A program made the position numbers and the translations under genes. The notes beneath the pieces are model-generated. The model saw only the letters and a list, made by a program, of their open reading frames with translations. It did no database searches and was not told the origin of the DNA. Of a stretch of DNA of 55,995 nt, positions 7,262-42,746 are shown piece by piece; position 1 is the stretch's first letter; each line of letters starts with the position of its first letter. The stretch is from Pelomyxa schiedti (Eukaryota; Protista; Evosea). The stretch covers positions 1 to 55,995 of the forward strand of contig JAHLWZ010000422.1 of the NCBI GenBank assembly GCA_020536535.1, given 5' to 3'.

Positions 7262-8337
7262 ATGGCTACAGGTGGTGCGCCGGGAAAAGAATATGACTTC
7301 ATGTTCAAAATTCTATTGATTGGCGACTCGGGCGTTGGCAAAAGTGCGTTTTTCAACCTCTTGTGTCCTGTGTCAATGCACGTGCACTAACCTAGAAAAA
7401 TTTAATTAACCAAAACCATGGGAGTTTTATTTTTGTCAAGTGTAGCAAAGCAGCTGCATAGCCAAATTTACTGAATCATTATTTATTAGGTTGTTTGCTG
7501 TTGCGGTTCGCTGATGACTACTGGACCGACACATACATATCCACAATTGGAGTAGACTTTAAAGTAGGTTCGTTTTCAACTGCTTTGTGTACTAACGGAA
7601 ATACAAGATCAAAACTATAGATTTAGATGGAAAGATAGTCAAAATGCAAATTGTGAGTCCCACATCCCTTTTCTTTCGTTACTTAATTTCTCACATATAC
7701 ACAGTGGGACACAGCAGGTTCTTTGTTCTTTTTTCCTTAACCTTTCTAAACGATATAACCTACAGGGCAAGAAAGATTTCGAACAATCACAAGCTCATAC
7801 TACAGAGGTGCCCATGGAATTATGGTCGTTTTCGACGTAACCGACCCACAATCCTTTGGAAATATCAAACAGTGGCTGACTGAGATAGACCGCTACGCTT
7901 CAGAACTTGTTACCAGAATCATTGTAGGAAATAAAATAGACTTGGAGAACAAACGCTGTGTAACACAGGCCGAAGCACAGGTACCTCCCTCCATTGGACT
8001 GTTCACAACCAACTCAACTCCTCAATAACTCAGAGCTTTGCCGAATCCAAGGCTGTACCATACATTGAAACAAGTGCCAAGAACAGCCTAAACGTGGACA
8101 GAGTACCGCCCCCCCCCCCTTCCCAAAACAACATTACACAAAACAAGAAAACCCTGGGGCTTGTCAAACTAACTATTAAAGGTGTTTGTGGAAATGGCCA
8201 GGGAAATAAAGAAGAAGAACAACCAACGTGGGCCAGGTCAACCAGGGCAACCAGGCACTGGTGGCAGTACTGTACTTGTGAATGAACCACTCAAAAAGTC
8301 AACAGCTCCTCCAAAGAAAGCTGGAGGTTTTTGTTAA
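7262..8337 (+). CDS. RAB1: Rab1-family small GTPase (7 exons)
   Basis: [76 protein letters not shown]-terminal GGFC*. All introns are GT-AG and keep the frame. Confidence 0.95.
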
Positions 8338-33300: not shown

Positions 33301-33914
33301 TGTTGTTGATGAGCTGAAGAGGGTACCCCTTTGCTATTGTCTTGCTCAATCTCCGCTAAGTGTTCATATGCCTGCTGAAATAAGCAAATCCCAGAACAGT
33401 GATAAAGATAATATTACCGCATTGGAATCGCCGTCGTTCATTGCCAGAATTGCATCAATTGACTTCATGTCAAACCTTCCTTCAAATGCATTGAACAACA
33501 TTGTTGTTGGCTACATGCACCCCAGTGAGAACGAATACAAGGAAAGGGCGAAAATAATTCCAAATAAATAAATGGCATATAATAAAGGTTGCGTACATCA
33601 TGGGACGCTGGCATGGTAGACGATGGCATCCCATAATAGTCACCAGGGGGCCCTTGAGCAAAAGCGAGTGCGGCGGGGTCGGCGCTCGGTATGTCCTCCC
33701 AGGACTGCATCACGCCACGGGGCACGAACTCCTCACATCCCAGAGCCCACGACGTGGGGGCAGAGTCCGCCCCGGGCGCGCTGGGCGATGACGTCATCGG
33801 CGGAAGCTGGGCACCACCCCAGTTCCACTGTGTTTGCAGTTGCATTTCATTTTGTTGTTGTTGCCTTTGCTGCTGCAGACGGCGACCCCCACGCACGCTC
33901 CCGGTCACTTTCAT
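30400..33914 (-). CDS. Smr-domain protein with PAM2-like motif, CUE/UBA-like segments, tandem CCCH zinc fingers and DUF1771 (Cue2/N4BP2/NONU-1/CID7-like putative mRNA endonuclease)
   Basis: LGCEEFVP, CSLYLL..GNCLVKNCPFKH, CKYWLKGCCVRGDACFYRH, AKEHSRK.GRYY..KMKEYHEAAKDSIF, TLDLHGLHPEEA, LYVITGTGHH and GGMLRIVL*. Confidence 0.85.
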
Positions 33915-34370: not shown

Positions 34371-36093
34371 ATGGCAGCCACAACACCCGCCGAAGTACCC
34401 GTCCTTCGCAACTACATCAATGGTGCGTTCGTTGAGTGCAGGGGAACCAGAGTCCTCGATGTCATGAACCCCGCTACCGACGAAGTCATCAACAAGGTCC
34501 CAATGTCCACCGCCGAAGAAGTCGACGAATGCGTTCAGTAAGTTTTTTACTACGGCGCTATCGTTTTTTTTTTTTTTTTTTATGTTTTTTTTTTTTTTTT
34601 CCCCGTTCATACGTATTTTTTTTCCCTTCACTGACTCATCCCTTGTTTCTAACTCTAATCGTTACCTTTAGGGCTGCCCAACGCGCTTTTCTTAAGTGGA
34701 GGGAGGTTCCCTGCATTCAGCGCATCCAGCCCCTTATGCGCTGCCTTCAGTTCATCAAGGATCGCAAGGACGAGATTGCTCGCTCTATTACCATCAACCA
34801 CGGAAAGGAAATCAAGGCCGCCGAGGCAGAAGTCGTCAGAGCTTACCAAATGATCGAGAGTGCTTTGTGCACACCCGAATGGCAGAAGGGAGAGTTCATG
34901 GAGAATGTTGGTGGGTCTTTATCCTTTTCCCTTCGTTCCTCACTTTGTTCTAGCCCCCGACATTGATGAGTACTCTCTCCGCGTACCCTTGGGTGTTTTC
35001 GTTCACATCCCACCCTTCAACTTCCCCGGAATGGTTCCTTTCTGGTTCTGGCCATATGCAGTTGCTGCTGGAAACTCATACATCATCAAGTCCAACGAAA
35101 TTACACCTCTTTCAATGCAATTGATGTTCGAGTGCATCCACCAGGCTGGTTTCCCCCCCGGCGTCATCAACTACATTCACGGTGATGTCGAAGTTGCCAA
35201 TCTTCTGATTGATCACCCCCTCACCAAGGGAGTCTCCAGTGTTGGGTCTACCCCCGTTGCCAAGGCCATCTATGCTCGCGCTTCCGCCTTGGGCAAGCGC
35301 GCTCAATGCCACGGTGGTGCCAATAACTACCTCCTCTTGATGCCAAGCTGCAATTTGGAGGAGATTCTCCCCAACGTGCTGAACAGCGTCTTTGGAAACA
35401 CAGGCCAGAGGTGCCTTGCCGGGTCTACAATCGTCGCTGTAGGTAACGAGAAGTGGTACCATACAGTCCGTGATCAGTTCATCGCCGCCATCAAGGCTAA
35501 GGTAATAATCTCTAATACTCTGGTTTTTCTAACTTGTTTAGGTCCGCCCTGGAAGTGGTTTTGACCTTGGTGCAGCAATGGGACCAGTTGTCAGCAAGAA
35601 GGCTCTCGCTACTCTTCTTGCCCAAATTGAGGAAGGCGTTGCTGAGGGTGCTCACCTCCTCCTTGACGGCCGTGGTGTTGTTGTACCTGGTTTCCCCAAG
35701 GGATACTGGTTGGGCCCGACAGTCTTTGAAGGAGCTCGCCCAGGAATGAAGTGCTATGAGGATGAAATCTTCGGCCCAGTTTGCCGAATTGACCACATTA
35801 CAACTCTCGATGAGGCCATTACCCGCATCAATGCTCACCCCAAGGGCAATGCCAGCACCATCTACACCGAGAATGGCAACGAGGCAAGGAAGTTCAGGCA
35901 CGAGTGCGCTCCAGGCATGGTTGGAATCAACATCGGCCTTGTCGCTCCAATTGCCTGGTTCCCTTTCGCCGGCGCTAAGGACTCCTTCATTGGCACTCTC
36001 AGGGCTCAGGGCAGGGAATGCTTCGAGTTCTTCACCCAGGAGCACGTTGTCGTTGAGAGGTTCCACGGACACGGAAAGATCGAGTGGGATTAA
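34371..36093 (+). CDS. mmsA: CoA-acylating methylmalonate/malonate-semialdehyde dehydrogenase (ALDH6/MmsA/IolA family)
   Basis: LRNYINGAF, VMNPAT, PLGVFVHIPPFNFPGMVPFW, VGSTPVAK, KRAQCHGGANN, FGNTGQRCLAGS (catalytic Cys), EIFGPV, GMVGINIG and FPFAG.KDSF. Three introns and strong C-ending codon bias. Confidence 0.93.
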
Positions 36094-36184
36094 GGAAACC
36101 AAGAACCCCTTACAGTCTCACCCTCCTCTTTGCTAAACAGGAAGAGGAGAAAAAGGAAAACATAAAAAAAAAGAGAAAATTCTT

Positions 36185-37735
36185 TTACACACAAGTGAAT
36201 GCTTCCATTTCTTCCCTTACTTCGAGAGGCAGGCTCTCCACATACTCTCTGACTTCGGGTATTTTTGTGTTTGTGGCCAGCCAGTGCAGGCACAGCTCCC
36301 TGAGGTTGATGAAGTTGGGGGAATAGGATTGCTCTGCGAGTCCAAGAATGGCTTTGCTTGTCTCGAAAGTAAGGTTGTCCTAATTGGTGATTACTAGTTG
36401 AGAACTGAAGAGGAAAAGATACCGCAATGAACTTCTCACAGAGGGAGCAAAGGTGAGGCAAAAGAAAGAGGTTTCCCATGGTCCAAATTTCCATGACATT
36501 CTCGCCGTCAACAGTAACGTGGTCGGTGTAAAGATAGCGTAGAATATTTCGCAAAGTGGCCTGTGGAATAGTGGAAAAACTATATGGCCCAGTGGGATTC
36601 ATTTTGAAAAGTGTCCGGAAGTACTCTGACCTTGCTTTCAAAATCTGTTGAAAATTTTTAGAGAACGGAACACAATACCAGGAAATTACATTGGAGTGAG
36701 CCCCTACGCTTTCGTTGTTGGCAGCAATAAGTGTGACATCACATTCAGCTGGTGGTTCTGCGCTCAAAAGGGCTTCCATGTCAGCCACCATGGAGGAGGA
36801 TTTCATTGTGACAGTGGAGAAGCCAAAGAAACCTGTCTCATCTGACCATTTCAGGCGAACTGCAACCGTTGCCTGTGGTGACTTGGGAGTGTTGCCTTGC
36901 AATTTGTCACGAGCAGCCACTCCAGGGATGCACACCAAGGCGTAAGAGTACCTATCACCAAGAGCAAAATCTCGAGCCTCCAGCGTTGATCCCAGACGCT
37001 GCAGGAGTGCCAGAGCATCAGGTGTGAGAAGGTTGGTAAAAGCATCCGCCGTGACAATCACCACAATTACATCCCTATCAAAGAATGCATTTAGACTAAA
37101 AACCCAACAAAGCAACACCCCTCAAATAACATCATAACAAACACAGCACAACCAAAACAAAAAACGAAAATTAAAATTTGAACAACTCAAAAAGAAGTGA
37201 GCCCCTAATTATAGACAGATAGATTACGAGAATACCTCCTGTCCACCAATGGGCCACACTCTCGCACAAAGTCAGCCGAGGCGCCTTCCTTCCCCCATGT
37301 GTCATAAGTTGCCGAGAACAGCACGCCGCCGTCGCCCTCCTCCGCGGGGTGTGCCCGCGACATCACAACCACGTTCATCCCCCTCATCCCCTTCCTGTCC
37401 CCTAATTGCTTGTGGTGGTGCCGAGACGACTTGGACGAGGACGAGCCTGACACGGACACTGACACGGAGACGCACGCCGAGCCCGTCACCGAGACTGACA
37501 CGGAGCCGCTTGGCCGCCAGCTCAGCACCGGGCGCCGATTCACTACGACTGATGGCCCACGGGGGTCCTTGCTGTCTGTCATGTGGTAGAAATTGGCCCC
37601 TGTGGCTACAAGCAGCATCGACCTCGACGCACCGCCATTGGGTTCCGCTCCCATAATGGTGGTTGTGGTGCTACTGCTGGTGCACGTTGTGGGGGCAACC
37701 GAGGCGCCGTCTGTGGGTTCTTCACCGCTTGTCAT
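36185..37735 (-). CDS. ILEI/PANDER(GG)-like domain + BTB/POZ domain protein
   Basis: ILEI-like: RGMNVVVM..TYDTWG..DFV..VIVVIVTADAF..ALQRLGS..GDRYSYALV. BTB with BACK-like tail: CDVTLI..AHS.ILKARSEYFRTLF..ILRYLYTD..L.SLCEKFI. Confidence 0.8.
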
Positions 37736-37792: not shown

Positions 37793-40700
37793 TTAGGATA
37801 GATCAGTGATGCCTAGCTGCTGCAACAAATTTTTTTGTTGCTGAAGGAGGGACTCTGAAGGAGGTTAGTTGCAAGAGAATTAACATGACAAAGTACAACA
37901 AACCTGCAGTGTCGAAATCATCAGCCTGAGAAGCTTCCTCAATCATCTGTGCAAGTTTTCCCACTTGGGCTTGCAGCTGTACTTTCTCAGACTCACTGAG
38001 TTGTTTAGCAGGAACAGAGTTTCCATTGTTTTCCTTGGTGTCTAATTCAAAGTTGTTAACAGCCCATTATACTATTGTTATTGAGTAGCCCGATTTGGGC
38101 AATGGTAACCTTCGGATTTCGTGTTTGCGGGAACAGTCTGCTTTTGGTGACTAATGCACACAGAGTTGGGCTCCAAATGGTCAGGTTCGGTATCACTGGG
38201 AAATGGTAGGTTGTGCTTGTTGCACAGTAATCTCAATGTATCTCTCCTTTCGACTAGCTCCAATTGCATCGCCTCTGCTTCATTGAAGTCTTCAACAGCA
38301 ACAGAACTGCCAAGTTAGAACAGTTAACTAGGGTAATGCTATTTGCGTGTGGAAGTTATTTGTGATGAGAGAATCGGAATTTGGGACACCTGCCATGAAA
38401 TTAGTGCTTTCATGCTGATGACAAGTTGCCGAAGGTGTTCTACCAACTTTGTTTCTGTTTCAATGTGAGATTCAAAAAGGTAGTTAACTCAGCCACACCG
38501 GCATCGATTTTACACTGTTTGAGCTGGGTGGAGCATGAAGTACAACACTCCGACGCTGAGTCGAGGTCTGATGTTGCCTGTGCAAGGGTCTGCTCATGCA
38601 GTTTGATTTCCGAGGTGTGTTTTTGCTTCTGCTCATTTTTTATCTGGAAACTTTGGTTACTGGAATGCAGCAGAAAAGTTGTACCTTGATTTCATTGGCG
38701 CACGCTCCTGCCGTTTTGAAGTCTTTCGCTATAAAACAGTAAGGACTACGAGGAAGAGGGTTTATAAGCAGTACCCTGGGCAGCAGCCTTTTTCTTTGTC
38801 TCAAGGGAAGGGAGAGCTGTATCAATGGAAGAAATCGCAGCCTGGAGGGTTGAAACGGCCTCTCGAGATGATGCACAAAGAGCTGTCTGTTGCACCATAG
38901 ATTGCTCTGCCTTTGCGAGTTGTTCTTCAATACTTTTTTTTATTTGGTAAGGAAAGGGAGTTGAGGTGGCAAATATACCTAGCTGTGTTGACACGAAGGT
39001 CAGTCTCTACGTCGAAAATTTTGTGTTGAACACTGCGGATTTCCTGTATGAAAGTATCTCGCTTTTTGAGCAATTGTATTTTCTCCATTTCCTGATATAT
39101 TCGTTGGCAAAAAAGAAGCTCTGGAATGTGTTTTTCGACTTTATCGAGGATAGCATTCATGGATTCAATCTCAGCTTGAATGGTTGATTTGACTTGTTCG
39201 AGTTGTTGTATTTCTGCTTCAGATTTTTGCTTGAACTCGTTCAAATTTTCCTTGGGAATGTTGATGGAAGAGAATTTCCACAGTAAATCCAGGTAACCTT
39301 TTCTTCATTTAGCTGTGCCGCTGTGGCAGCAATTTGCTTTCGCTCAGAGGAGATTTTATCTAACTCCTTTTTGTGTCTTGCACTAACAACAGAAATTTTC
39401 TCATCTACAACTATTTAAAAAAGAGAAAAACGTAGTACCAAACACACCACACTCATGTATACTTTTCTCACACAAAGAAGCCTCCTCCTTTAAAAGAGAG
39501 ACTTGTTTCAGTAATTCCTCAATTTTCCCCTATTCAGCTGTTGATCAATCTTAGGCATGGTTGTTTAAATGGAAACCTACTTGTAGAAGAGATAACTTTT
39601 CTTCTTGAACTCTTTTTTCTTCAAAGTGATCAGCAGCCTGGTGGAATGGTGAGTGAGATCAATTCATATGCCAAAAGTACTTGAGTGTGGATAGCGCAAT
39701 TCAATTTGTCTTCTGTTTCTGAAAGAATTTTTAGATCTAGTTCCGCGTGCCTATGAATAACGTTACTGAAAATACAGAAAAAAATGTGACTAACCCACTG
39801 TCCCTTTGTATCTGTGTTGTTTTAGCTGTTATTGTGTCAAAGAGGACTGTTTGTTTTTTTTCGATTTGCTCCTCAATATCTAGCACCGTACTTCGCTTTT
39901 CCTCCTGCGGGAATTATTCACTGAAGTATATTAAATGGCTAACCAGTATAATTTTAAGTTGTTCTACAGTCTCTGTGGCCTCTTTCATTTCAAGCAGAGA
40001 AAGCTCACACCGAGTTTTATCAACTTCTGATTCAAAATTGTTTATCTCCGCTTGTTTCTCCTTCAAATGATAAATTGTTAGGCCTGAGTTTCGAACATTA
40101 TATTACATTTTACGTTATTTCTAACACTTTTGGGCTATACAGCAATTTGTTCATTTATCTGCGCAATTTGCTTGGTCAGCTGGTCTGCGGTAGTGTAATC
40201 TTCGCTAGCCGCTGCTTGCTGTTGCTGCTGCTGAAACTCATCCAAGTTATGGGAGAGCTTTGCAAATTAGAAGAGAAATGAAGTGTTTTGGTGAAAATAC
40301 CAGCTCGAGCGCGGACTTTGTTTCCCGCTGTGAAGTTATGAGGTCAGAAACTTTCTGCCGTAACACTTCAGCTTGATTATTAACGGTATCATTAGGTTCA
40401 CATGCAATCGTCTCCTTTCTTGAGGCTTCCACAGATAAGCCTGATAAAATATTCGGTAAAGTAGAGTCTTGTTCTACAGAGACATTCTCAGACACCTCCA
40501 CACTACTGCTGGGAAGGATTCGTGGACTTGAGGTGTCACTTTGAACATCAGCAATAGCAGGCTTAATTTCCACTGTGGGAGAGGGACTTGTTGTGGGCTC
40601 AGAGGTTGAAGGAATGGTGGCAGTACAGGAATTTGTTGCGGTTTCTTTGCTGGACACAACTATATGTTCTTCAGGGACAGGTGGCTGTTCTTGGATGGGT

Positions 40701-41488
40701 TGAGGTTTGGTTTCGGTACTTGGTTCTTCTGAATGAGCCACCCCAATGGTTAACTTTGCTTTCTTCTTTTTTATTGGCTTTTGAGGTTCTGGGGTATTGT
40801 CTACACCATATTGACTGGTAGTCTAGATGTCAAACATGTCAATAGTAACTCCAAAACGATTTGAAAAAAAAGACAGAAATGAAAACAGGAACAAAGAAAA
40901 AAATGTGAAGGTGAGCAGAACAGAATTCACGTTTTCTGTTTCCTGTGATGCCATGAAGGAGAATGCACTGCCCACATTGGCATCACCAACACTGACACTC
41001 TGATCACCACCAGTACTGCTGACATTGGGTTTTTCCAATTCCCCACTAGTGGTACCACCACCATTCCCAGAAAGGAAAGAGAACGCCGAGACGCCTCCTT
41101 CGCCGTCGCCTCTTCCCGCTGGCCCACCTCCTCCCATAATCCCGATTCCCGTCTGTCTGTTGTCCACCGCCTCCCTCGCGCCCCCCGCGGGGTCGTTCTC
41201 GTCGGGGGGCTCGGCCGCCAGCATCAGCCCGTCGAATATCCCCTCCTCCTTTTTCCCCTTCCTCCTGTCGTTGCTGCTACTGGCACTGTCGTTGGTCTTG
41301 GCCGCGTAGTTCGAAGTACTTACTTTCGACCCCACGGTCGATGACGTAGGTTGTGGTGGTGGTTGATGCTGCTTCTTGTTCTGGGGGGGTGTTTCATGGG
41401 TAGAATTACTGCTCGTCGTAGTCGTTGTGAGGGTTTCCTTACTTTGTGTTGGTGGATTGTTTGTTGTTTTCTTCTTGAACAGCCTCAT
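37793..41488 (-). CDS. Long coiled-coil protein with several UVR-like motifs and N-terminal tepsin-like AP-4-binding motifs
   Basis: Disordered N-terminus with GIFDGLML, SAFSFL and SAFSFM, then many heptad exons. UVR-like motifs: AAASEDYTTADQL, AKDFKTAG, VAVEDFNEAEAM, ASQADDFDTA. Stop at 37793-37795. Confidence 0.75.
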
Positions 41489-41799
41489 GATTGCGGGTGT
41501 AGCGGGTATCACCTTTTCTTTAATGTTTAATTTATGCTTTTTCGAAAGCCAAAAGAGATAGATGTGTGATTTTTCGGCGATTCAATCAGAGGCTGCGCCA
41601 AAGAGTGATGTTGCGGATGCTATCAGGGACTTCTGTTCTGGGAGTTATGATGAGGGTGCATAGGAGGGAGGATTGTGGTGGTGAGATTGTTGTGGTAATG
41701 AAGGGTTTGATGCTCCCACTGAACAGCGGCGGCATAAAGGTGGCAACAGTTTGGGCAGAACCGGGAACACTCATGGGATTGGCCACAGGCACTGGCACT

Positions 41800-42746
41800 C
41801 CCGGTGGCAAGTGCACTTCAACTTATTGATGCAAATGGCCTCAAATCCCCAGTTTCTGTAATTATCAGGATTGTTTTTAAAAAGAAAAGTCAGAAACTTA
41901 CCTGCCGAGCTCTTTTCTGGGGCAAGATGTCTTCGTGTGTGAAATGAGAGACACACTGGTAAATGCACAGCACAAAGCAACGCCGCATAATATTCGGGCG
42001 TACATCACAGTATCACTATCTGCAGCAAAAGGTGGGATTCTAGGAACCCTTTTCTTTGGGAGGTTTGAACTAAGGAGAAAAACAAACATGCACACTTGGT
42101 TTTTTAAAGTCCGGGTGTATACCTTTTCTAAATCTTTTTCCGTTTTTTCAGAACGGCTTGGTGGCCACTGACAAACCTGTTTTATGTAGGAATAGAGGCC
42201 ACCGCCAGGAATGAATTCAATAAGGAAGTAAAGATGCACTCCATCGTCAAATGTAAACCTAGAACTTAGTCTTGAAGGAAGGTGGATAAGGAAAATCAAC
42301 TGAATTTCTTGCACTTGTGGGACCCCCTGATCCTGGTCAGCTGATTGCACTTCATCTCGTGGTGAAGGTGGCAAAGGTGATCGTGCATTATCCTTCTTCT
42401 CAATGAGGGAGGAGGATGGTGGTGCTAACATTTCCTTGGTGCTGGTAGAATCAACAACGCGCGGTCCCATTATCTCCTCGTTTGGATCACTTTCATTGTT
42501 CACAACATGAATGCCAGAGAAGTTCCCAGAAACAATATGGGGCTGTAGTTCTACAACTTTTGAACCGGTATTTTCATCTTCACTCCCATCCACATCGCTC
42601 TCAGAATTTTCATTTTCTTGAGACTGCTTCTGCTGCCTCGCACTTCCTCCGCCACCACCAAGTCGCTGCATGAAACTGCACCACCAAGCAACAACTTCTT
42701 GTGCACATACACGCCACTCCTTGTGTCTAACAGTAAGCCATGGCAT
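41800..42746 (-). pseudogene. Chimeric/degenerate AGC (PKA-like) kinase remnant
   Basis: FTFDDGVHLYFLIEFIPGGGLYSYIK (subdomains IV-V) and PPFAADSDTVMYARILCG (IX-X) are present. I find no G-loop, HRD, DFG or APE. The segment is joined to unrelated low-complexity sequence. Confidence 0.55.

Follow-up and report, generated by a model that had tools for sequence, protein, structure and literature searches.

Tepsin-type motifs in a DISC1-like protein of the amoeba Pelomyxa schiedti suggest that the DISC1 family may work with AP-4

Introduction

DISC1 has hundreds of reported partners; to our knowledge, it has no agreed ancestral function, and no mechanism has been accepted for its Ser/Phe-rich head motif. 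Few accessory factors of AP-4 have been described, and we know of no scaffold protein for its coat. Loss of the AP-4/ATG9A pathway leads to hereditary spastic paraplegia. The consensus for binding the epsilon appendage of AP-4 is reportedly S[AV]F[SA]FLN, as given by Mattera et al. in 2015, and in tepsin the epsilon motif comes after the beta4 motif.

DISC1 is built of UVR hairpins with conserved aromatic residues (Y371 and F598 in mouse), after which a linker leads to one more UVR hairpin at the C-terminus (PMC13273187). The core of mouse DISC1 is a compact, UVR-mediated tetramer, which is folded back and forms no long rod, and the C-terminal UVR module, carried on a low-complexity linker, binds NDE1 (PMC13273187). 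The head is disordered and contains two conserved motifs, of which one is basic (Arg-rich) and the other Ser/Phe-rich (PMC6046077). Listed homologues come from Dictyostelium (Q550K0), Monosiga (A9UYG7), Arabidopsis (Q8L4Q6), rice (Q84Z60) and T. brucei (Q57ZU7) (PMC13273187). The literature that we searched describes no connection of DISC1 with AP-4.

The beta4-appendage motif is defined as LFxG[M/L]x[L/V] and is found at about residues 470–477 of the 525-residue tail of tepsin (PMC13335578). Among other AP-4 partners, RUSC2 contacts both AP-4 ears (10.1101/235226), and Hook proteins are coiled-coil dimers (PMC7185972).

Gene structure and expression

The 922-residue protein described here is the product of a spliced and expressed gene on the minus strand of the window (the whole stretch of DNA that was analysed, 55,995 nt of contig JAHLWZ010000422.1 from Pelomyxa schiedti). 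The coding sequence (37793–41488) runs from an ATG at 41488 to a TAA at 37793–37795, the same limits as in a preliminary description of this DNA, and a check of frame and splice sites gives 18 exons and no internal stops. Exons 1–6 are located at 41488–40931, 40822–40301, 40257–40141, 40060–39944, 39904–39795 and 39750–39681; exons 7–12 at 39637–39581, 39529–39448, 39404–39298, 39250–39139, 39090–38979 and 38932–38775; and exons 13–18 at 38728–38685, 38643–38499, 38454–38394, 38306–38110, 38041–37904 and 37854–37793 (all on the minus strand). The introns are 41–108 nt long and of the GT-AG type, plus one of the GC-AG type (38307–38393, minus strand), the joint of which (38306/38394, plus-strand ends CT..GC) is found in two RNA runs.

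RNA contigs (single-cell RNA from one study) contain 13 of the 17 exon junctions as joints. The 14th junction, between exons 1 and 2, is represented by a 17-letter loose end in the RNA that is the start of exon 2, and the remaining three are consistent with the independent NCBI model Pelo_5169, residues 196–1081 of which are identical to residues 37–922 of our model. The RNA contigs extend only to 41409, leaving the start codon at 41488 uncovered. An in-frame 48-nt intron (39091–39138, minus strand), the joint of which (39090/39139) is found in two RNA runs, is missing from P0001; its retention would insert 16 residues.

Helical core and its similarity to DISC1

When a profile of the core (A2) is compared with 177,635 PDB sequences, 9rux_A, the mouse DISC1 core, is ranked first (E 7.9e-5, 24.6 bits). 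The alignment is a 77-column stretch over the CC3-UVR turn, and the invariant signature LPxLExxKxxAxxxRDFKxA is aligned there. The profile of the whole protein (A1) gives a weaker DISC1 match (E 0.033). In an Atlas feature search, DISC1 clusters score 0.84–0.86 and the UVR clusters of plants and mucoromycotes 0.91–0.95. The nearest clusters, as a lead only, are from Streptophyta: the plant UVR coiled-coil family mentioned in the preliminary description probably exists, and its members are probably the plant homologues of DISC1. We conclude that the Pelomyxa protein is very probably a member of the DISC1 scaffold family, and therefore its kind is not undescribed. The earlier proposal of an undescribed protein gives way to this placement by the core profile, in which 9rux_A comes first (PMC13273187). 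The similarity to DISC1 consists of one 77-column stretch and the UVR repeats.

UVR-like motifs, of which four had been described, are indeed present, but the sequence contains five [ED][DE][FY]xxA sites (SEDYTTAD, ADHFEEK, AKDFKTAG, VEDFNEAE and ADDFDTAE, all on the minus strand). AlphaFold2, run on a single chain, models three of the five as helix-turn-helix hairpins. SEDYTTAD (40183–40206) forms the predicted turn of hairpin 1 (core residues 44–46, pLDDT ~90) and is matched by Pfam UVR below threshold; its Tyr is in the position of Y371 in DISC1. AKDFKTAG forms the predicted turn of hairpin 2 (core residues 374–376, pLDDT ~90), and its Phe corresponds to DISC1 F598. This turn is part of the family signature LPSLETKKKAAAQ-AKDFKTAG (38706–38814, spanning the intron 38729–38774), which occupies invariant columns of A1 and A2 and is aligned to DISC1 LPALLEAKMLALSGSCFSTAKELTEEI in PDB 9rux_A; the DFK motif has its Phe in all five aligned sequences. 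The C-terminal hairpin 3 (core residues 539–581, pLDDT 82–91), made up of predicted helices 539–561 and 565–581 with ADDFDTAE (37853–37925, spanning the last intron) at the turn, is preceded by a disordered linker of ~50 residues (488–538, pLDDT below 50). The other two sites are recognised by sequence and have no modelled hairpin: ADHFEEK (39614–39634) is within the long helix 47–373, and VEDFNEAE (38273–38296) is within helix 377–487 (pLDDT 60–80). The Pfam UVR score of the Pelomyxa protein is below threshold (15.2 bits vs a cut-off of 21.5) and that of an Umbelopsis relative is above it (31.4 bits).

The predicted core (~560 residues) is almost entirely helical. Together with ear-binding-type motifs at one end of the protein (see below), this long helical region favours a golgin-like rod, as the preliminary description had it, which would be anchored in a target membrane and capture AP-4 vesicles by its motif-bearing tip. 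However, the protein has no transmembrane segment, Pfam shows no GRIP, GRAB or other anchoring domain, and the single 327-residue helix of the model drops below pLDDT 60 in its middle, with an overall pTM of 0.32. As the homologous DISC1 core moreover folds back into a compact tetramer (PMC13273187), the golgin-like rod is improbable. A Foldseek search against the PDB returned nothing at E <= 0.001; the matches listed are SMC, SH3BP5 and chemoreceptor-type helical proteins and do not include 9rux, but the library ends on 2026-04-08, the DISC1 structure paper is dated 17 April 2026, and 9rux may be missing from this library. An Atlas shape search gave generic helical matches only (TM at most 0.29 by query).

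Short motifs in the disordered head

Exons 1 and 2 (40301–41488, minus strand) encode a disordered head of 360 residues, which is rich in Gly, Ser, Thr, Pro and Asn by composition and carries all of the short motifs. Pfam finds no significant domain in these exons (nothing in exon 1 and one sub-threshold, 13-bit match in exon 2). The layout of the head resembles that of the DISC1 head domain (order compared with PMC6046077). Its basic cluster, KKKKAK (40754–40771, minus strand), pairs in alignment A1 with KKKRTR of the relative P0005, and we infer that it is equivalent to the conserved basic motif of DISC1 heads.

Three further motifs are encoded by exon 1, all on the minus strand and exactly where the preliminary description had placed them; the imperfections that it had recorded, an Ile for Leu in the first motif and the lack of a final Asn in the other two, are borne out as well. 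GIFDGLML (41219–41242) is of the beta4-appendage type and fits LFxG[M/L]x[L/V] except for Ile in place of the first Leu. The epsilon-appendage type follows 44 residues downstream, in two RNA-covered copies. SAFSFL (41072–41089) agrees with S[AV]F[SA]FLN at six of seven positions, with Ser for the final Asn, and SAFSFM (40952–40969) at five of seven, with Met for Leu and Ala for Asn.

Short linear motifs are easily over-read, and these were picked after the fact, both of which speak for functionless chance matches in an ordinary coiled-coil protein. The composition of exon 1 (186 residues, with 26 Gly, 24 Ser, 20 Thr, 13 Asn and 13 Pro) argues against this, as it includes only six Phe, five of which fall within the three motifs. 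Among 300,000 composition-preserving shuffles of exon 1, nine contain one epsilon-type match and ten contain one beta4-type match; none contains two epsilon-type matches, and none contains both motif types. A chance origin is rejected because of this last result. The analytic joint probability of the motif set is ~2e-14, and relatives in distant lineages have three to five copies of the motif in their heads. Chance matches are thus a highly improbable explanation. Among the inspected sites of the genome that code for SAFSF, no other is in a comparable disordered coding context.

Recurrence of the motifs in distant relatives

Word-index searches with residues 196–1081 of P0001, with profile A1 and with the core of P0006 were capped at 8000 candidates, most of which seem to have been taken up by low-complexity and coiled-coil words; among the matches listed there are two distant relatives, close kin from Umbelopsis and no others. 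An exhaustive HMMER search with exon 10, the query for which included 16 intron-coded residues, returned nothing beyond the NCBI model of this very gene, one fragment copy and two matches that are spurious, both of which fall on the intron-coded part. A metagenome scan with A1 gave 600 pattern matches, none of which was confirmed. Even between the Pelomyxa protein and the nearest relatives found, identity is ~20–25%. The head motifs of P0006 to P0009 are independent of the discovery of these sequences because the search scored the core only.

The epsilon-type motif recurs in distant relatives, both in P0005 and in Umbelopsis, and so passes a test that the preliminary description had set for its own proposal. 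P0005 carries an N-terminal MFGGLEV and the copies SAFSFLN, SAFSFLY, SSFGFM, TSFSFL and SAFSFLG, of which SAFSFLN matches the epsilon consensus at all seven positions. The Umbelopsis relatives have three S/F copies (SGFSFL, SAFAFI and SQFSFI), and the beta4-type motif is absent from them. Every S/F copy across all relatives conforms to F-x-F-[LIM]. In the comparison, which comprises three lineages only, the beta4-type motif is found upstream of the S/F motifs in two of the three.

The same copies could be an ancient head motif of the DISC1 family that serves another partner, either Atg8, through an F-x-x-[L/I/M] LIR/AIM core, or some other conserved protein, in which case the likeness to tepsin would be convergence on a small hydrophobic peptide. 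All copies in all relatives contain this core, the Pelomyxa schiedti genome has three ATG8 loci, and tepsin has a predicted LC3B-binding site that overlaps its beta4 motif (PMC13335578). Furthermore, no AP-4 subunit was detected in the sampled Mucoromycotina genomes (Barlow et al. 2014, PMC4022609). Umbelopsis, a mucoromycotine outside the sample of that survey, keeps the S/F motifs; therefore, the motif can persist without AP-4, unless Umbelopsis has AP-4. On the other side, the likeness to S[AV]F[SA]FL exceeds this core, with Ser at position -2, a small residue at -1 and Ser or Ala separating the Phe pair, the full SAFSFLN is present in P0005, and the Atg8 reading does not predict the upstream beta4-type motif of two of the three lineages. 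LIRs are usually preceded by an acidic run, and Met is non-canonical at their last position. The Pelomyxa motifs are preceded by Gly, Val and Ser, with no acidic run. We consider a partner other than AP-4, such as Atg8, rather unlikely.

AP-4, ATG9 and ENTH genes in the genome

The presence of AP-4 in Pelomyxa schiedti, on which the preliminary description had made its proposal depend, is borne out by genes for two subunits. The epsilon subunit (C949, with the appendage at 33481–33828) has Adaptin_N and the family-specific appendage platform AP4E_app_platf (PF14807, 50 bits). The beta4 subunit (C812) has AP-4 beta-1 as its best PDB match (6.4e-8, vs 7e-5 for AP-2 beta); its ear exon has no match in the PDB. 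PF09066 was tried as a marker of beta4 and rejected, its sole match (C517) being beta1/2, and two other candidates (C800 and C792) turned out to be beta3-like paralogues. ATG9 is also encoded. In a non-conclusive search, the family of the NDE1 partner, NUDE_C, was not detected in the genome.

Pfam detects neither an ENTH nor a VHS domain in the single exons or in residues 196–1081 of P0001; the protein is therefore not tepsin, as had been stated at the outset. The genome has four ENTH loci: C448, C359, C509 (epsin-R-like) and C889 (divergent; a piece of it has no match in the PDB). Neither beta4-type nor epsilon-type motifs are present within 6–9 kb around each of them. No tepsin gene was recognised in the Pelomyxa schiedti genome, so the motifs have no in-genome calibration.

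Discussion

As a whole, the data are best explained by a DISC1-family scaffold with an AP-4-engaging head, an explanation that we hold with evenly divided confidence. Judged from the sequence of the motifs, binding of AP-4 by the Pelomyxa head may be regarded as an even call. By homology with the tetrameric core of mouse DISC1, the core would self-assemble by head-to-head contacts between UVR motifs, and the flexible linker would carry the C-terminal UVR hairpin as a client-binding module. The head would act like the tail of tepsin: by the identity of the motifs, GIFDGLML would bind the beta4 appendage of AP-4, and the two SAFSF[LM] copies would bind the epsilon appendage. This would give about 12 weak peptides for the AP-4 ears per tetramer. 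At the trans-Golgi, AP-4 might recruit an oligomer of this kind with high avidity, and the oligomer might either cross-link AP-4 complexes or couple AP-4 carriers, with their known cargo ATG9, to the client of the C-terminal module.

A wider proposal is tentative, and we consider it rather unlikely: throughout the DISC1 family, and in human DISC1 too, the conserved Ser/Phe-rich motif of the head would bind the epsilon appendage of AP-4, joined in some lineages by a beta4-binding motif, and DISC1 would have begun as an oligomeric scaffold of the AP-4 coat, either accessory to it or forming an outer layer. In the amoeba head, a motif of the DISC1 family is near-identical to an experimentally defined tepsin peptide and is adjoined by a second tepsin peptide, which turns a vague resemblance into one that can be tested cheaply. 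Were AP-4 binding true, DISC1 would gain a conserved cell-biological role in the traffic of ATG9 and in export from the TGN, and AP-4 would gain a multivalent, oligomeric partner; were the family-wide proposal true, a psychiatric-risk scaffold would be linked to the AP-4/ATG9A pathway. If AP-4 binding is false, the S/F motif is still an ancient interaction site.

Among the known systems, golgins and other coiled-coil tethers are also long helical proteins with a peptide at one end that binds a vesicle factor. Unlike golgins, the Pelomyxa protein lacks a membrane anchor, and its homologue DISC1 has a compact core. RUSC1/RUSC2 and FTS-Hook-FHIP are cytosolic, are recruited by AP-4 and couple AP-4/ATG9A carriers to microtubule motors, in which the Pelomyxa protein may resemble them; it differs in that it is without RUN, SH3 and Hook domains, and Hook binds mu4 rather than the ears. 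Similar to tepsin (ENTHD2), the Pelomyxa protein has a disordered region with two candidate peptide types, the beta4-ear type first and the epsilon-ear type tens of residues on. Unlike tepsin, it is without an ENTH or VHS-like domain, its motifs are N-terminal and not in a C-terminal tail, its epsilon-type motif is present in two copies, and its remainder is a putative oligomerising helical scaffold.

The protein shares most with DISC1 itself. At the level of motifs and composition, both have a disordered, Ser/Gly-rich head with a basic and a Ser/Phe-rich motif. This is followed in both by a helical core with at least two UVR-like hairpins, the conserved Tyr and Phe and the LPxLExxK...F.TA signature, and then by a flexible linker and a terminal UVR hairpin. 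Unlike DISC1, the Pelomyxa protein has five UVR-like sequence motifs rather than three, and its S/F motif is duplicated, is nearly exact to the epsilon-ear consensus of tepsin and has a beta4-type motif alongside.

Gene structure and expression

The coding sequence runs on the reverse strand from an ATG at 41488 to the end of a TAA at 37793. The gene model, placed in a P. schiedti assembly of 52.4 Mb in 5337 contigs, was first drawn from open frames and GT-AG sites and then amended with RNA; its final version, resting on frames, splice sites and RNA contigs, has 18 exons and encodes 922 residues. Thirteen splice joints are seen in contigs from three single-cell RNA runs of one study, while the exon 1/exon 2 junction is a 17-letter loose end in RNA contigs. 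RNA joints define an in-frame 48-nt intron (39091–39138, reverse strand), which keeps the frame if retained, and a GC-AG intron (38307–38393, reverse strand). One RNA contig, from sequencing run X3, stops at 41409 and carries 9 extra letters (reverse complement, GTACATGGG) that we take to resemble the end of a SMART template-switch oligo. This contig end, which falls 79 nt inside the coding sequence as counted from the proposed ATG, may be a cDNA 5' end or else mark a truncated cDNA; the start codon itself is thus not confirmed by RNA. Between 37739 and 41051, the DNA-like run X4 and the RNA contigs disagree with the window at a handful of single bases and short indels (e.g. T>C at 38898 and A>G at 39455), a pattern that fits variation between alleles or strains in single-cell data.

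The database copy of the product is 'hypothetical protein Pelo_5169 [Pelomyxa schiedti]' (P0001, 1081 residues). Its residues 196–1081 are identical to residues 37–922 of our model and represented the spliced product in searches; exons were searched singly. The first 195 residues belong to the adjoining upstream kinase-like gene, so Pelo_5169 looks like a fused misprediction. The fusion point is at NKKQHQ, and the kinase domain is broken mid-fold at ...FLIEFIPGGGLYSYIKQ (41380–42746, reverse strand). The downstream neighbour (36090–37118, reverse strand) has a long open frame with a segment that, read by eye, appears BTB/POZ-like (...TLIAANNESVGAHSNVISWYCVPFSKNFQ...RNILRYLYTDHV...). A degenerate partial copy of the gene lies elsewhere in the genome (G000:C1056:8525-9099, locus L056:3538-4099, forward strand). 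It covers the exon 10–11 and exon 15 regions at ~60% identity with in-frame stops, and, having no head region, is probably a pseudogene fragment, from which the 118-residue database protein P0003 seems to derive.

Very probable membership of the DISC1 family

Pfam gives no match above any curated cut-off (UVR reaches 15 bits) and finds neither ENTH nor VHS in the product, so the protein is not tepsin, in agreement with the preliminary description. Large protein searches were nearly blank and returned two distant relatives: P0005, 1251 residues, from a Logan assembly, and P0006, a 773-residue protein from Umbelopsis isabellina annotated as 'UVR domain-containing protein', to which P0007 to P0009 are closely related. 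All share one plan, comprising a disordered head, E[DE][FY]xxAD, EIEEL, an invariant signature LPxLExxKxxAxxxRDFKxA and a terminal motif A..E[DN][FY][DE].A.

A profile of the helical core, run against 177,635 PDB sequences, has as its top match 9rux_A, 'Disrupted in schizophrenia 1 homolog' (E 7.9e-5), and the family signature aligns with DISC1 LPALLEAKMLALSGSCFSTAKELTEEI, the CC3-UVR turn bearing F598. According to the 2026 DISC1 structure paper (PMC13273187), head-to-head UVR hairpins hold the core as a tetramer, homologues from Dictyostelium, Monosiga, Arabidopsis, rice and T. brucei conserve Y371 and F598, and NDE1 is bound by a UVR-like module at the C-terminus, attached through a low-complexity linker. 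In the AlphaFold2 model of the Pelomyxa core (mean pLDDT 76), turns occur at SEDY and AKDF, and a disordered linker of ~50 residues leads to a hairpin at the end of the chain. The profile match, the shared layout and the S/F (SAFSFL-type) and basic head motifs make it very probable that the protein is a DISC1-family member. The suggestions of an undescribed family and of a golgin-like rod give way to a scaffold of known type, and the plant UVR family that the protein had been said to resemble is most likely that of the plant DISC1 homologues. An Atlas language-model search returned Streptophyta clusters at 0.91–0.95, a mucoromycote UVR cluster at 0.92–0.95 and DISC1 clusters at 0.84–0.86, scores that serve as leads only.

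AP-4-type motifs in the head

GIFDGLML (41219–41242), SAFSFL (41072–41089) and SAFSFM (40952–40969) lie exactly where they had been reported, in an exon of 186 residues, 52% of them accounted for by Gly, Ser, Thr, Asn and Pro. Of the six Phe in this exon, five fall within the three motifs, and the head also carries a KKKKAK cluster. The epsilon consensus, reportedly given by Mattera et al. in 2015 as S[AV]F[SA]FLN, is matched at 6/7 and 5/7 positions here and at 7/7 in P0005 (SAFSFLN). GIFDGLML differs from the beta4 consensus LFxG[M/L]x[L/V], as given in PMC13335578, only by Ile for Leu. Neither both motif types together nor two epsilon-type matches arose in any of 300,000 shuffles, and the analytic expectation of the set is ~2e-14.

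Genome-wide, a loose DNA pattern for S-A-F-S-F-[LIMF] matches 265 places versus 191 for the reversed control. Eleven loci reading S-A-F-S-F, fetched and translated from the first 100 of these places, are non-coding, antisense or within a large, apparently folded open frame, and none has a comparable Gly/Ser-rich head. Two near-identical large open frames (G000:C385:504 and G000:C574:50028; >500 and >800 codons open) both contain ...HFWHSAFSFIRDGSH..., which looks to sit in a folded domain; the two contigs probably represent alleles or a duplication and have no bearing on the finding.

The S/F motifs recur in the three lineages that could be compared. P0005 has five S/F copies and an N-terminal start MFGGLEV, and the heads of the Umbelopsis proteins hold SGFSFL, SAFAFI and SQFSFI. 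Because the search that retrieved the Umbelopsis kin used the core alone, it did not pick these proteins for their head motifs. Set against an AP-4 reading of this recurrence, Barlow et al. (PMC4022609) place complete AP-4 among fungi only in Rhizophagus and give 'no AP-4 subunits' for the sampled Mucoromycotina, the group holding Umbelopsis, which was itself outside the sample. Either Umbelopsis keeps AP-4 or the S/F motif there has another partner. A second point against the AP-4 reading is that every S/F copy also matches the Atg8-interaction core F-x-x-[L/I/M], and P. schiedti encodes ATG8.

AP-4 in P. schiedti and a possible accessory role

AP-4 is encoded in the genome. On contig C949, Adaptin_N precedes PF14807, the epsilon appendage platform specific to AP-4 (50 bits versus a cut-off of 27), and the adaptin on C812 matches AP-4 beta-1 best (9u9i_B, 6.4e-8, versus 7e-5 for AP-2 beta). 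C517 holds a beta1/2 adaptin with a full sandwich-plus-platform ear. Two closely similar beta3-like adaptins with long acidic hinges (G000:C800:1070-5000, forward; G000:C792:46700-50710, reverse) look like a lineage-specific AP-3 beta duplication. ATG9, the best-known AP-4 cargo, is encoded as well. Tepsin, sought in the genome to calibrate the motifs, was not recognised; NUDE_C was not detected there, which does not imply its absence.

By homology, the protein would be an oligomeric, probably tetrameric, DISC1-type scaffold. Judging by motif identity, each flexible head would offer three peptides to the ears, one of beta4 type and two of epsilon type, hence about twelve per tetramer. Singly weak contacts would sum on an AP-4-dense membrane patch, recruiting the scaffold and letting it bridge adjacent AP-4 complexes, and AP-4 carriers could be joined to clients of the C-terminal hairpin. 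There is good reason to propose such a role beside AP-4, and we give this hypothesis roughly even chances, the Umbelopsis motifs standing as a clear counter-observation.

Comparison with known systems

In the full-text literature searched, DISC1 meets AP-4, tepsin or AP4E1 only as reference-list or gene-list co-mentions; most subscription papers lie outside this coverage, so novelty is not proven. Two further points are leads rather than results: the human DISC1 head presumably has an S-S-F-S-F-I stretch, and flies, nematodes and yeasts are not known to have DISC1, nor AP-4 and tepsin. The gene adds a member to a family already described. It is through such peptides that known AP-4 accessory proteins grip the ears, but no description was found of the near-identity of the DISC1-family S/F head motif with the AP-4 peptides of tepsin.
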